A stretch of 21,407 nt of DNA. It comes from Prasinococcaceae sp. CCMP 1430 (Eukaryota; Plantae; Prasinodermophyta). The stretch covers positions 59,879 to 81,285 of the forward strand of contig RQSC01001337.1 of assembly GCA_013416795.1 (NCBI GenBank), read 5' to 3'. A program made the position numbers and the translations under genes. The notes under the pieces were generated by a model. That model saw nothing but the letters and a program-made list of their open reading frames with translations, searched no databases and was not told the origin of the DNA. Shown here in pieces: positions 1,262-19,854 of the stretch (the stretch's first letter is position 1; each line of letters starts with the position of its first letter).

Positions 1262-2089
1262 ATGCCCAAGTCGCGCCGCGACAAAGTCGTGGCGCTCACC
1301 AAGGTGAAGAAGAAGGGCCGCGACGCCAAGGAGAAGGCCATCGGCGCCATCCGCGAGGAGGTCGCCAACGCCGATGCGGTGTACGTGCTGCGCTACAGTC
1401 ACATGAAGAACGCGAAGCTCAAGGAGGTCCGCGACGCGCTCGCCGGGCAGGCGCGGCTCTTCTTCGCGGCCAACGGCGTCATGGCCGCCGCGCTCGGCCG
1501 CGACGAGGAGAGCGAGGCGCGACCAGGGCTCGCCGCGGTCGCCGAGCGGCTGCGCGGCTGGTGCGGCCTGGCCATTGGCTCTGCGACCAAGGAGCAGCTG
1601 GAGGAGGTCTTCGAAATGAACGAGGAGCCCGTCTTTGCCAAGGTCGGGTCCACGGCGGGTCGCACGGTGGTCGTCGAGGCGGGCCCGCTGGAGGGATACG
1701 CGCACGACATGGAGCCGCAGCTGCGTAAGGAGGGCCTGCCGTGCCGGCTGGTGCGCGGCGTGGTGGAGGTCACAGCACGCCACGTGGTCTGCACAGAGGG
1801 CGAGCCCATCGGCGCCAAGGAGGGGCGGCTGCTGCGGCTGCTGGGTGAGGAGCTGGGCACATTCAAGATGTGGGTGGAGGCGGAGTGGCGGGAGGGCAAG
1901 GAGCTCGTGGAGCATGCCGAGGTGCCGGATGAGGTCGCGGCGTTGCCCGCCAAGGCGGCGCTTGGCCTGAGCGTGGCTGCGGACGACGGTCTCGATGACG
2001 GTCTGCCGGCGCACATGGGGCTCCCCGCAGGGTACGGCGGCGACTTGCCGCCCGACGACGGCATGGAGGAGCTGTCGGACGACGAGTGA
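1262..2089 (+). CDS. MRT4: mRNA turnover protein 4 / 60S ribosome assembly factor (uL10/P0 paralog)
   Basis: Starts MPKSRRDKVVALTKVKKKG (characteristic Mrt4 N-terminus, ATG at 1262), then MKNAKLKEVR, RLFFAANGVMAAALGR, HDMEPQLRKEGLP, VCTEGEPI..EGRLLRLLG and an acidic tail. TGTAA at 2113-2117. Confidence 0.95.
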   Translation: MPKSRRDKVVALTKVKKKGRDAKEKAIGAIREEVANADAVYVLRYSHMKNAKLKEVRDALAGQARLFFAANGVMAAALGRDEESEARPGLAAVAERLRGWCGLAIGSATKEQLEEVFEMNEEPVFAKVGSTAGRTVVVEAGPLEGYAHDMEPQLRKEGLPCRLVRGVVEVTARHVVCTEGEPIGAKEGRLLRLLGEELGTFKMWVEAEWREGKELVEHAEVPDEVAALPAKAALGLSVAADDGLDDGLPAHMGLPAGYGGDLPPDDGMEELSDDE

Positions 2090-2173
2090 GCGCCAGCGCG
2101 GGCGTGCCTGCATGTAAGAATTCGCTATGGTACAATTGCGCGCAGCGACTGACGGCGCGCGCGCATCTCACGA

Positions 2174-14225: not shown

Positions 14226-16396
14226 ATGAACGCCGACTCGCTTGAGACGCATGCGAGCGGATCGCGCGCCGCGGTGCGCTTCAGCCGTGCTACACGTGCT
14301 CGCGTGCCCACCCGCCCGCTTGTCAGGCGCCCGCGCTCGCTCGCGCCATGATCCGCGCGCTGACCCGCGGCATCGTCGGTTTTGCTCATGCTCGCGTGCC
14401 CCCGCTCCCCGCCCCCCTCCCCCCCCACACCACGACCCCCCGACCCCCCAACCCCCTCGCGCACTGCTGGCAGGCCAACCCCCTCCGCCTGAAGAATGAG
14501 ATTCTGTCGGGCCTGACGGTGGCCATCGCTCAGGTGCCCGAGAGCGTGGCGTTTTCCTTCGTGGCGGGGGTGGACCCGCTCGTGGGCCTGTACGCGACCT
14601 TCTTCCTGGGCCTGGTCACCGCGCAGATCGGTGGCCGGCCGGGCATGGTGTCCGGTGCCGCGGGCGCCATGGCGGTGGTCGCGAAGATCGTGATGGACAC
14701 CAACGGGCTCTTCCCGGAGGACAAGCTGCTCGCCCGCGGCGACATTGCGCCGTGCGCGGGCGTCGAGGACGGCTGCCTGTCGCTGCGCGACCAGGCCTAC
14801 GAGGCGCGCCGCGAGCTCCTCTTCCTCACCATGTGGATCGTGGGCATCCTGCAGGTCCTGTGCGGCGTCTTCCAGCTGGGCTCGCTGGTGAAGCTCATCC
14901 CGCAGACGGTGATGATTGGCTTCGTCAACGGGCTGGCGATCATCATCTTCATGGCGCAGTTGGAGTCCTTCCAGGAGGTCGACTGGAAGAGGGCCTACGC
15001 CATGTTCGACGCGGACGCCTCGGGCTCCGTGGGGCCCGCCGAGGTGCGCGGCGTGTTCCACGCGGACCTCCCCAGCCTCACCGAGGAGCAGCTGGCCCTG
15101 TCGGTGGCCCGCGCCATGAACCAGACCGACGCGGACCGCGACGGCGCCATCTCGCTGGCGGAGTTCTCGGCCGACGGCGACTACGCCATCCACGACGCCT
15201 ACGACGAGGTCAAGCGCTGGCGCACGCTCGACGAGGGCACCACGTGGCTCATGCTGCTGTACGTGTTCGGCTCGATGCTCATCGTGCACTTCCTGCCGAA
15301 GCTCACCAAGGCCGTGCCGTCGTCGCTGGTGTCCATCTGCACGTGCCTCTTCTTCGAGCACGTCATCGCCCGCCCCGCGATGGACATGGAGACGCCCACC
15401 GTGTCGGACATGAGCCCCGTCAAGGGCGGGCTGCCCCAGTTCGCCCTGCCCGACGTGCAGCTGGACGGCGACGCGATGGGCACCATCATGCCCACCGCGG
15501 TCTCGCTGTGCCTCGTGGGCCTCATCGAGTCCATCCTGACGCTGCAGCTCGTCGACGAGATCCTCGACGACACCTCCGAGGCGACGGGGAGGTGCACCCA
15601 GGAGTGCGTCGCGCAGGGCATCGCCAACCTGCTCTCGGCCATGTTCCAGAGCATGGGGGGCGACGCCATGATCGGGCAGAGCACCATCAACGTCAAGTCG
15701 GGGGGCATCGGGCGGCTGAGCACGACCTTCGCCTCGATCATGTTCCTCATCTTCATCGTGGCGGCGTCCTCGGTGATCGAGCTGGTGCCCATCGCGGCGC
15801 TAACGGGCGTGCTCTTCATGGTGGTGTACTACACCTTCGACTGGAGCTGCCTGCGGCTGATGGCGGGCGACGTGCGCGCCTTCGCGCGGTCGGGCTTCAG
15901 GAAGTACCCGGGCGACCGCTGCCGCTGGCAGGACTCGTTCCTCATCGTGCTGGTGACGGTGGTGACGGTGCTCACCAACCTCGCGTACGCCGTCATCATC
16001 GGCGTGGTGGTCGCCGCGCTCTTCTACGCGTGGGACGGCTCCTCGCAGCTCAGCGTGCGCACGTCGGAGCAGCAGGGCCGCAAGGTGTACGCGTTCGACG
16101 GCGTGCTCTTCTTCGGCACCGACCGCGCCTTCAAGAACGCCTTCGACATCGCGAACGACCCCGACGTCGTCATCGACCTCACCGCGGTGCCCATCAAGGA
16201 CTACTCGGGCCTCGCGGCCCTGTGCAACCTCGGGAAGAGGTACGCCGAGCGCGGCGTGTCGGTCACCGTCCTCACCGCCGAGGCGCTCAACGGGCGCATC
16301 TTCGCCACCTTCGGGAAGCGCCTGACGGACGTCGAGGTCGAGTGGGCCGACGCGTGCGTCGGCGACCTCGAGGGCGCGGGGGGCAAGGACGCGTGA
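14226..16396 (+). CDS. SulP/SLC26 anion (sulfate/bicarbonate) transporter with a C-terminal STAS domain and an inserted EF-hand pair; proposed exons 14226-14273 and 14474-16396
   Basis: NEILSGLTVAIAQVPESVAFSFVAGVDPLVGLYA, GGRPGMVSGAAGAMAVV, GFVNGLAIIIFMAQL, GLIESILTLQLVDE, QECVAQGIAN, MGGDAMIGQSTINVKSGG.GRLS, and STAS GVLFFGT...DYSGLAAL. 14348-14473 looks intronic (GCTGAC at 14359, C-rich tract, CAG at 14471-14473). A phase-0 GTGCGC donor at 14274 follows an ATG at 14226; this first exon is tentative. Confidence 0.93.
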
Positions 16397-16755
16397 GGGG
16401 GGCGAGGAGGGCGCAGCGAGGGCGCGCGGGTGAGGGCGCGTTGTGGCGCGATGGCGGCGCCCCCGCGAGCGCTCGCACTCTGTACTCTTTTTTTTTCTAG
16501 CAGCCCGCCGCGCCTTTGCGCTGGCGCGCGGGCGCTGGCGTTCGGATCGCCGGCGTCTCCCCAATCTTCGCCCCGCGCGGGCGGAGCGTCTGTTACGTGG
16601 GGTGTTCTGTGCCATGCGCGCCGGCGAAGAGGCAGCCGGCGGCGCTGGCGTGCGCTCGTCTCGTGCTTCTGTCACTCGCGTCGGTCGTCCTTTCTCGTGC
16701 GCCGCGCCGCCGCGGCTGTCGCGCGCGCGCCCCGGGGGCGCGCCCGCCCGTCCCG

Positions 16756-17279
16756 NNNNNNNNNNNNNNNNNNNNNNNNNNNNNNNNNNNNNNNNNNNNN
16801 NNNNNNNNNNNNNNNNNNNNNNNNNNNNNNNNNNNNNNNNNNNNNNNNNNNNNNNNNNNNNNNNNNNNNNNNNNNNNNNNNNNNNNNNNNNNNNNNNNNN
16901 NNNNNNNNNNNNNNNNNNNNNNNNNNNNNNNNNNNNNNNNNNNNNNNNNNNNNNNNNNNNNNNNNNNNNNNNNNNNNNNNNNNNNNNNNNNNNNNNNNNN
17001 NNNNNNNNNNNNNNNNNNNNNNNNNNNNNNNNNNNNNNNNNNNNNNNNNNNNNNNNNNNNNNNNNNNNNNNNNNNNNNNNNNNNNNNNNNNNNNNNNNNN
17101 NNNNNNNNNNNNNNNNNNNNNNNNNNNNNNNNNNNNNNNNNNNNNNNNNNNNNNNNNNNNNNNNNNNNNNNNNNNNNNNNNNNNNNNNNNNNNNNNNNNN
17201 NNNNNNNNNNNNNNNNNNNNNNNNNNNNNNNNNNNNNNNNNNNNNNNNNNNNNNNNNNNNNNNNNNNNNNNNNNNNNNN
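16756..17279. other. Assembly gap (N run)
   Basis: Run of N, abutting a CA microsatellite. Confidence 1.
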
Positions 17280-17363: not shown

Positions 17364-18292
17364 GCACTCACGCACGCGCACGCGCGCGCTCGCACACACG
17401 CACGCGCGCGGTGTTAGGGTTCATTTTAAGGGTTACTTTCAGGGTTAGTGTACAGTACAGCATAGCATAGACCCTTACTGGGCGCCTTGGCCAGGCGGCG
17501 CGCGCTGGAGCGATTCTTAGGCGGGCGTAAATTAGCCTGGCGAGGCGTACGATTTTAAAGCTCACCTCTGTATTATCTTGCGGTAGAAACCCTCAAATAC
17601 GCTCGGAGCGTGAATTGAGTGAGTTTGCATTGTTCAAAGCCTTCGTAACCTTAACCTCATCCGGAACGAGGTGCCGGGAGGCGCAAGGTGCCGCCGATGG
17701 CGCGGCGGCGGGGGCGACGGCGGCTGTGCCCGCTCCCCCCGCTCACATCGCCCGCCTCGCTCGACCCGCCGGCCCTGAGCTCGGGCGAGCCACACGTGCG
17801 CGCGCGCGAGGGTTTACGAACCCGGGTTCGACGCGGGACGAGCCGGAAAAACACCGGGTCGAGCCTGCGAACACGCCCGGTCGATCCGCCGAACGCCCTC
17901 GAATGCACCGCGACTGCCCCGGGGGGGATTCTCTTTATGTTTGGGGGGGGGGAAAGGAGAGGGGGCGGAGCGCGGCGGATTCGATGCGGATTTTCACGTC
18001 CGAGGAATCGCATCGGAATGGTGAATCACGTGGATTCATGCCCGCGAAGTGTGCAATGACGACCTGACTTAATATTAGAAACGAGCGGATGGGTAGGATT
18101 TGGAGTCGCGGTACCGGACGGATCCGCGGCTTCGTTTCGATTTCGGGGTGGATTCCGGGCGATTGGGGCCGATTTGGGCCGCCGCGCAATCCGCCCGGGG
18201 CGGGGGGAAAAATCCGCCCGCGGCGCCGAAAACGCGGAGCGCGCGCGTTTCGCGCCGGCGTCCGCGGGTTTCCGGTGCGTCGCGAGCAGCCA

Positions 18293-18306
18293 AAAAAAAA
18301 AAGAAA
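18293..18306 (-). terminator. RNA polymerase III oligo-T terminator of the tRNA-Leu gene
   Basis: TTTCTTTTTTTTTT directly 3' of the discriminator base on the minus strand. Confidence 0.85.
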
Positions 18307-18460
18307 TGTCAACGGTGGGGTTTGAACCCACGCAGCTTTCGCTATTGGTACGCACAGGCGCCGGAGGCAAATTTCCGGCAAGATCCAAGTCTTGAGACCA
18401 ACCCCTTAGACCAATAAGGGTCGCAGAGAAACAGGGTCTGCGACTCTCGGGCACGTTGAC
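18307..18460 (-). tRNA. trnL-CAA: tRNA-Leu(CAA) with two introns: a D-loop intron at about 18445-18415 (31 nt) and a canonical 37/38 intron at 18390-18351 (40 nt)
   Basis: Reverse complement: GTCAACG TG CCCGAG[31 nt]TTGGTCTAAGGG G TTGGT CT CAA G[40 nt]T ACCAA TAGCGAAAGCTG C GTGGG TTCAAAC CCCAC CGTTGAC A. Perfect 7-bp acceptor stem, 5-bp anticodon and T stems, long variable arm, A73 discriminator, intact B box. Confidence 0.93.
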
Positions 18461-19107
18461 GCCATCGTAGTTTAGGTTTCGCAAACTCTTGCGTACATAG
18501 ATCTTCTCTCATGACAATGCAATTTGATGGCGGTCTGAAGTCAGGACCCTGTGCGATACCGCAAACGCGCGCGCGCCGCGAAACGGCCATGCTGGTGCTG
18601 TCGCGGCGGGCCGCGCGCGCGCTCAATGCGTTTCGATGGCGCGCGCCGGCCCCCATCGAAACGCACCCGCGGCGGCCGGAGCGGAGCGCGCTCGCGGGGC
18701 GATCTCAAAAGCTTTTTTACAGTACAAATCGCACGCGTCCGCGGCGTCGTTTCGCGGTTCCCGCGCGCTTTCGCGCTCGAGCGTTTTCTTTGTGACGCTC
18801 TTTTTCTTTTTACGTGCGTTTTGATGGGCGGACCGCGCGGGGCGGGGCGGGGGCGCGTGCCGGCCGCGCGCGCGCGCGGGGCGGAAAAAACATTTTTAAA
18901 AAAGAAAAAGAAAAAGGGGGTTCATCGACCGACCGACCCTCCAACCAAACAAACACACACACACACAGACAAAAAAAAAGCGGATGGGATGGAGGGTCGG
19001 CGCCGAGCGAGCGCCAGCGGCGCGCGCCGCGGCGCGCCGCGGCACGGGTTCCGGGTCCGTTCCTGGGTCCGCGCCGCCAGCGCGTGCGCCGGCCCGGCCG
19101 CGTCTAG

Positions 19108-19854
19108 GCACTGTTGCGCCTCACGTCCTCGGCATGGGCGGCCGTGGCGTTGCAAACGCGGCTGGTCTCGAAACAGGCCGTCCTGACGCCGAAGCAGCTT
19201 GCTGCGCGGGCCGCGCGCAAGGGCGAGCAGGCGGAGGCGGCACGCGCGAGGCAGCGCGCCGCAGAGGCCGTCCGGCCGAAGTACGACCACGCGGCACAGG
19301 CCGCTCTGGAGCGCGAGTTCGAGGAGCGAGCCTCGCGCGACAGGCAGCAGCTCGACGCGCACGCGCGAGGGGAGGCAGACACAGACGCGGGGCCGCAGCC
19401 GCTCGCCCAGCCATGGACGGAGGAGTGCGCCCCCGGCGGACCTGCGCTGCCACCGCCCCACGCCACTCCATACGTGCCTAGCAATGCCGTGCCGAGGATA
19501 CCTGGTGAGGCCGAGCGCGCCGAGGTCGGTGCGCTGGCCGCGATCCTCGAGCGATTCGGCCTGCGCGATGTGGAGGACCTCAGTGCGCTTGTGTTCCGCC
19601 AGCAAGAGAGCATCGCAAAGCTCCAGGAGGAGGTCGCCGACATGCGCGTGCGGCTCACGGCCGCCACGACGAGAGCCGCTGTGGCGGCCGCTCCCTTCGT
19701 GCCGCCGGCGGCCTCCGCGGGCGTGTCGCGTCCTGCTTTGCCGCCCCCGGNGCCCACGCCCCGTCCCCCCCCACCTTTTCTTCGCCACGGCCCCACTTCC
19801 CCCTCGCTCGCCCTCCGCCTCCCGCCGGCGCCCTCCCAAGCAGCAGCCAGCTGA
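19108..19854 (+). CDS. Hypothetical protein with predicted coiled-coil segments; exon structure unresolved
   Basis: GC3-rich, protein-like frame (KQLAARAARKGEQAEAARARQRAAEAVRPKYD.., LSALVFRQQESIAKLQEEVADMRVRL). There is no in-frame ATG after the TAG at 19105-19107, which may be a splice acceptor. GCTGAC at 19850 and AG at 19918-19919 suggest a possible last exon 19920-19945 (GSLFGYDV*). Confidence 0.55.
   Translation, partial: ALLRLTSSAWAAVALQTRLVSKQAVLTPKQLAARAARKGEQAEAARARQRAAEAVRPKYDHAAQAALEREFEERASRDRQQLDAHARGEADTDAGPQPLAQPWTEECAPGGPALPPPHATPYVPSNAVPRIPGEAERAEVGALAAILERFGLRDVEDLSALVFRQQESIAKLQEEVADMRVRLTAATTRAAVAAAPFVPPAASAGVSRPALPPPXPTPRPPPPFLRHGPTSPSLALRLPPAPSQAAAS

Follow-up and report, generated by a model that had tools for sequence, protein, structure and literature searches.

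Introns in the D- and T-loops of tRNA genes are described in a 2026 review as a trait of red algae and of red-derived nucleomorphs, and it is left open there whether they are ancestral, convergent or transferred (PMC13578239). Cyanidioschyzon merolae has 14 D-loop introns; D-loop introns are spliced in this alga, and 'no H' introns are found in it (PMC3728597). Chondrus crispus tRNA-Tyr harbors a D-loop intron (20/21) together with a 37/38 intron, and its splicing has been validated experimentally (10.1101/2021.12.21.473619). In the nucleomorph of Guillardia theta, introns of the D and T arms are excised, many of them without a defined BHB, according to what PMC4090602 and PMC3978253 relate of Kawach et al. 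(2005). Green algae are known from reviews for permuted tRNA genes and almost no ectopic introns (PMC3978253; PMC13578239). Table 1 of the former review, after Maruyama et al. (2010), gives one 'no H' intron, at 27/28, in the permuted tRNA-Ser(UGA) of Ostreococcus lucimarinus, the sole ectopic intron listed there for this species, and places the permuted junction of O. tauri tRNA-Ser(CGA) at 15/16. In archaea, independent half-motif splice sites have been described (PMC4090602). The sequence-only reading of the locus presented here had rightly pointed to C. merolae as a precedent, but its list was incomplete, leaving out C. crispus and the G. theta nucleomorph.

The window, that is, the whole stretch of 21,407 nt that was analysed, is nuclear DNA of a marine green alga, with a GC content of 0.69, in keeping with the 69.8% published for Prasinoderma coloniale (PMC7455551), the probable species. 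Positions 18460..18307 of its minus strand form a nuclear tRNA-Leu(CAA) gene of 154 nt with two short inserts (Table 1), and the acceptor, D, anticodon, class II variable and T arms all lie within it. When both inserts are removed in silico, ARAGORN calls a tRNA-Leu(caa) of 82 nt with every stem paired, so that the two-insert gene proposed from the letters alone has been borne out. The invariant bases and A73 are present in this model without inserts. The gene has a B box, does not encode CCA, is followed by a T run and lies in a nuclear context, its neighbours being eukaryotic genes such as Mrt4 and SulP. Its A box is not contiguous, as it is split by the 32-nt insert, and the longest T run inside the gene does not exceed T3. 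A permuted or split tRNA gene was rejected, since the three exons are collinear within the 154 nt. The gene shows no decay, as had been argued before: its stems, invariant bases, 37/38 A-I pair, B box and terminator are intact. The reading favoured here, with a probability of roughly 0.8, is that of a working, doubly spliced nuclear gene, probably formed by a lineage-specific intron gain.

Table 1. Features of the tRNA-Leu(CAA) gene and its flanks (positions in the window)
Feature	Position	Strand	Remarks
Exon 1, tRNA positions 1-15	18446..18460	-	14/15 identical to the relative's gene; acceptor 5' strand, U8, D-stem 5' strand, A14, G15; first half of A box
D-loop insert at 15/16, 32 nt, predicted non-canonical intron	18414..18445	-	Missing from the relative's orthologue; layout: 1 nt + 8-bp stem with 9-nt loop + 4 nt + 2 nt
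8-bp hairpin of D-loop insert	18420..18444 (arms 18444..18437 and 18427..18420)	-	BHB h' position
Last 6 nt of D-loop insert, CCUUAU	18414..18419	-	Place of H' plus bulge in a BHB
Exon 2, 23 nt	18391..18413	-	U16 G18 G19, D-stem 3' strand, anticodon-stem 5' strand, CAA, G37
Anticodon CAA	18394..18392	-	
Canonical 37/38 intron, 40 nt	18351..18390	-	Between G37 and U38
Exon 3, 44 nt	18307..18350	-	U38, anticodon-stem 3' strand, 3-bp variable arm with GNRA loop, T arm, acceptor 3' strand, discriminator A73
B box within T arm	18327..18319	-	
T11 run, predicted RNA polymerase III terminator	18292..18302	-	The relative likewise has a downstream T run
9-mer TACGCAAGA	18487..18495	-	At -35; possible upstream promoter element

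A close likeness is seen to C. merolae (PMC3728597), whose genes also combine 37/38 and D-loop introns with a split A box and a downstream T run and are also missed by standard scanners; the length of the present insert falls within the 11-69 nt found there. However, C. merolae is a red alga outside the green lineage, its splicing was shown by RT-PCR whereas here it is predicted from DNA, and the TATA-like upstream element reported there is not evident here. C. crispus tRNA-Tyr (PlantRNA 2.0), whose gene was called a pseudogene by tRNAscan-SE, has the same two-intron layout, but it belongs to another red alga, its D-loop intron is fixed at 20/21 and not at 15/16, and BHB-like structures are predicted for it. 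The G. theta introns, as cited in the same secondary accounts, measure 3-24 nt, against 32 nt here, and belong to a nucleomorph of red-algal origin. The mamiellophytes are green algae likewise, but the genes tabulated for them are permuted, whereas the present gene is collinear with two cis introns. The non-canonical introns of archaea (Thermoproteales; Asgard, 10.64898/2026.10.13.758758) include D-arm inserts likewise missed by annotators, lineage-specific gains and many D-arm cases without a canonical BHB; they are cut by the archaeal endonuclease, and the present locus bears no sign of archaeal origin. This layout is proven in red algae and nearly absent from published green algae. By analogy, the D-loop intron would work like the red-algal ectopic introns, yet it lacks the canonical BHB. 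Literature searches retrieved nothing on Prasinoderma nuclear tRNAs: the Prasinoderma genome paper, with supplements (PMC7455551), is silent on nuclear tRNA genes, and two tRNA surveys, one of them PlantRNA 2.0 (10.1101/2021.12.21.473619), do not mention the genus.

The intron at 37/38 begins one base 3' of the anticodon, and its antepenultimate G can pair with C32 (the A-I pair). It presents a 3-nt 3' bulge, an H helix with 3 of 4 pairs including C32-G, an outer helix of 6 bp and an internal GCCGGA/TCCGGC hairpin of 6-7 bp, so that the 40-nt intron, A-I pair and hairpin claimed from the sequence were all found. On this model it has the structure of a canonical 37/38 tRNA intron, with the A-I pair and 3' bulge of the canonical eukaryotic tRNA-Leu(CAA) intron, in an isoacceptor that often carries one (PMC12530127; PMC4090602). 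The unusual part of the gene is its D-loop intron only.

The locus can be compared with its counterpart in a related species, which was reached through Mrt4, a protein 75-76% identical to that of the window. Five marine contigs of this relative (L021, L022, L023, L035 and L036) carry a tRNA-Leu(CAA) orthologue, located about 350 bp from Mrt4, against 16 kb in the window. Other contigs, partly from the same samples, join SulP to an LRR-WD40 gene. The neighbourhood is thus shuffled but common to both species, and the window locus is, by this comparison of contigs, a positional orthologue and not a stray copy. At 37/38 the gene of the relative carries a 36-nt intron, with H 4/4, and its D-loop is uninterrupted. 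Over their 82 nt, the mature tRNAs show nine differences. They comprise three compensatory pairs of the anticodon stem (U-A/C-G, G-C/A-U and U-A/A-U), a change from A-U to G-U, a base of the GNRA loop and R57. None of them breaks a pair or an invariant base, an outcome with P 7.5e-5 under random placement of nine changes, and three compensatory pairs are expected from random substitution with P 3.5e-5. Exon 1 bases 10-15 are identical in both species, and among the five contigs of the relative the exons are identical while intron and flanks vary. The exons, as compared here, have thus evolved under selection for tRNA structure, and the absence of decay claimed before extends to the exon changes, which preserve structure; the compensatory changes attest selection from the species split onwards, which need not have continued after the insertion.

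The 37/38 introns of both species are weakly similar (P 0.03), and the intron at this site is therefore probably ancestral. Gain of the D-loop intron most likely took place in the lineage of the alga, after it had split from the relative. Among other green plants, no D-loop intron is known in tRNA-Leu(CAA). A gain is accordingly more parsimonious than a loss (see also PMC13578239), a single outgroup giving no proof of the direction. Upstream of both genes, at -35 in the window and at -26 in the relative (about 9047..9039 of L021, minus strand), the 9-mer TACGCAAGA occurs once per sequence within flanks that are otherwise unalignable; its P of about 0.007 was calculated post hoc, and it gives a weak hint of a possible upstream polymerase III element. 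On the minus strand of L021 (8610-9881), a 423-aa ORF without Pfam match is called over the relative's tRNA gene; such a call in GC-rich DNA is probably spurious, and it masks the tRNA.

Standard annotation had been expected to miss the window gene, and it does: neither ARAGORN nor Rfam (at E ≤ 1) reports a tRNA when run on the whole window. A local Rfam scan gives only a mis-registered match of 21.4 bits, below the 29-bit cut-off, whereas the relative's single-intron gene reaches 44.1 bits. A sigma-70 scan, irrelevant to this locus, was empty.

Another tRNA-Leu(CAA) gene with a D-loop insert is found in contig TARA_R110002003_G_scaffold9_30 (2116..1955, minus strand). It is fungal, with a Chs5 gene as its neighbour; an 81-nt cloverleaf appears only without a 31-nt 37/38 intron and a 50-nt D-loop insert (2099..2050), and ARAGORN misses it. 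This insert is unstructured, has no BHB, and shows a GTAAGA start, a CTAAC branch point and a CAG end, features that suggest a spliceosomal-type intron in a tRNA gene, of which no description was found in the literature by title or abstract. For the D-loop insert of the window, a spliceosomal intron was rejected: the insert starts with AG and ends with AT, and excision of the nearest GT...AG segment would take the D-loop with it.

The D-loop insert of the window contains a perfect 8-bp stem (z -5.1 against shuffles). When all boundaries were tested, the removal of 32 nt after G15 gave the best match to the relative, with the junction AG|UGG and a mature tRNA of 82 nt. With this boundary, fixed by the relative, the h' helix begins at the second intron base and ends six bases before the 3' site, and the 1+8+4+2 spacing of the insert is exactly that of a BHB. 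Eight in-register h' pairs arise in shuffles with P 1.1e-4, and a random insertion would not be expected to fall in this register. The central helix is a different matter. Its definition requires that exon bases -6..-3 at the 5' site form 4 bp with intron bases -6..-3 at the 3' site, and only 1 of these 4 pairs is present, so that none of the canonical forms (hBHBh', hBH, HBh') is present; a strict BHB appears at no plausible D-loop boundary, and no nested motif lies inside the insert. As the central helix does not form, the junction belongs to the 'no H' type, in which a short insert lies elsewhere than at 37/38 and a conserved tRNA is regained once it is taken out.

The missing central helix and the split A box would fit a pseudogene, in which a recent hairpin insertion had killed a once working single-intron gene, with UUG being read by another tRNA-Leu(CAA) or by tRNA-Leu(UAA). 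The relative, lacking the insert, allows for a young insertion; D- and T-arm insertions in eukaryotic tRNA genes are usually read as pseudogenes (PMC4090602); and three RNA or probable-RNA runs (X20, X23 and X24) hold no contig over the gene, although their libraries are unsuited to tRNA and thus uninformative. Against such a loss of function stand the undecayed stems, invariant bases, A-I pair and terminator, the position of the locus as an orthologue and the stem placed in the h' register with BHB spacing (P about 1e-4). A weaker point is that no second near-identical copy of the tRNA is visible in run X19, where a single unbroken contig matches the exons in records that are filtered. An insertion pseudogene is therefore unlikely.

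A functional gene with another D-loop boundary, or with two nested splicing steps, overlaps the favoured reading and is itself quite unlikely. The sequence-only reading had placed an insert of about 31 nt after G15, with a junction uncertain by 1-3 nt; the site and the 8-bp stem have stood, but not the length. Removal of 31 nt (D-loop AG|UUGG) likewise gives a valid cloverleaf, of 83 nt. Yet this boundary provides no h' pairs, against 8 for the 32-nt one, and disagrees with the relative. Two independent lines, the relative's D-loop and the BHB h' register, thus agree on 32 nt, and the mature length of 83 nt gives way to 82 nt. Nested steps are opposed by the absence of a strict BHB inside the insert. 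A 29-nt boundary, obtained when the lowest-energy fold is read as one BHB, was rejected on account of the four bases that it leaves between G15 and G18.

Three D-arm folds, any of which may be that of the substrate, lie within 0.3 kcal/mol of each other (-47.4, -47.4 and -47.7 kcal/mol), compared with -44.4 kcal/mol for the native D stem. The free fold of lowest energy has G13-G15 paired with the intron, and the intron ends on the second base of the 3-nt bulge that is left, so that the 3' junction follows this base. In another of the folds, the last bases of the insert, CCUUAU, which mimic tRNA positions 10-15, form 4 of 4 pairs with positions 22-25, as a surrogate D stem; this was noticed post hoc and has a chance probability of 0.08, or 0.014 with the A14 mimic. 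When the tRNA core is enforced, the pairing has a probability of about 0.7, and Rfam also aligns these bases as the D arm. It has therefore to be considered that only the 37/38 intron is spliced and that the 32-nt extension is kept, with the 3' end of the insert serving as D-stem strand in the native register. Such a tRNA would have U at 15 opposite C48, losing the Levitt pair, and would carry its insertion between positions 9 and 10, beside the U8-A14 core, while the native exon 1 bases 10-15 have stayed identical to those of the relative. No such cytosolic tRNA is known, and a retained insert is very improbable.

The same pairing suggests a further route for the removal of the D-loop intron, without a BHB and through a swap of D-stem strands, which on these models is possible but doubtful. 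Exon bases 10-13 and intron bases -6..-3 could both pair with 22-25 in the same register, so that in each of two alternative folds a D-stem strand would end two bases before one of the splice sites. Each site would be the '15/16' of a complete D arm, and an endonuclease that reads position along the tRNA body could cut both in turn. If true, this would be an undescribed mode of recognition, and it would account for the origin of a new intron from a duplicated exon end.

That the insert is real DNA follows from a 1014-bp contig of run X19 (depth 219), which matches positions 17793-18727 with 0 differences and 0 gaps and thereby answers the concern about misassembly raised with the first reading; it is not flagged as the source of the window, yet it may come from the same strain, so that it tests assembly and not conservation. 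An assembly artefact, for which the N gaps and low-complexity flanks of the window could speak, is thus refuted at contig level by this contig crossing the gene, no second copy of the insert or its hairpin is found in the window or the fetched loci, and its likelihood is negligible. The hairpin is also absent from the viral contigs searched. Database pattern searches comprised one single-exon and one single-insert pattern; the exon-3 pattern gave 14 matches in JGI metagenomes, 0 of them from the lineage of the alga. Contigs of the same species from the wild were reached via SulP, Mrt4 and the ORF at 19.1-19.8 kb, and no diverged wild copy with the insert was found among them, as they end before the tRNA (L033 at window position 17974).

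Several observations concern the surroundings. Contigs near-identical to the window come from Tara samples, whose wild populations are 96-99% identical to it. The window Mrt4 is 40-44% identical to chlorophyte and land-plant proteins alike, and its gene is a single frame of 275 codons (1262-2089), whereas that of the relative (L021:9375-10880) is split by introns, at least two. The SulP transporter (14459-16396, plus strand) has its best named match in Pycnococcus provasolii (69%), and its algal homologues have EF-hand matches inside the membrane domain. The wild contig L033 is 99.5% identical over SulP and holds about 1.2 kb between window positions 16755 and 17793, including a 261-aa ORF without Pfam match (L033:3438-4223, minus strand). 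The window has there an N gap (16756-17279) and an unmatched flank, and the extra segment would be either the content of the gap or an insertion polymorphism. The segment at 19107-19750 recurs at 96.6% in another gene context (L038) and is the start of a contig of its own in X19. The ORF in it lacks Pfam matches and has almost no homologues; rather than a gene linked to the tRNA, the segment is probably a dispersed repeat or a mobile element.

The favoured reading of a working, doubly spliced gene entails the following steps. RNA polymerase III would stop at the T run, giving a precursor of about 160 nt, and would transcribe the gene despite the split A box, as it does for the C. merolae genes. 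The tRNA splicing endonuclease and a ligase would then excise the 32-nt D-loop intron and afterwards the 40-nt intron at 37/38; this order is probable because 37/38 is the last substrate in C. merolae. The two D-loop cut sites would most likely be shown to the enzyme each in a half-motif of its own: at the 5' site (A14 G15|a) a 3-nt gap that separates the native D stem from h', and at the 3' site (a u|U16) the 3-nt bulge seen in the lowest-energy fold. After trimming of the ends and addition of CCA, an 82-nt tRNA plus CCA would result that reads UUG, a codon used 1, 2 and 10 times in the neighbouring ORFs.

The locus contributes an orthologue that lacks the ectopic intron, together with a junction in which the central helix does not form. 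In the gene pair the same tRNA body occurs both with the intron and without it, which makes a ready-made test. Neither ARAGORN nor a whole-window Rfam scan sees the CAA decoder of this genome. The 'no H' geometry would be a more demanding substrate for the endonuclease than a strict BHB, and, as the relative lacks the ectopic intron at the orthologous locus, a recent lineage-specific gain is favoured and hence a permissive splicing endonuclease in this deep green lineage.
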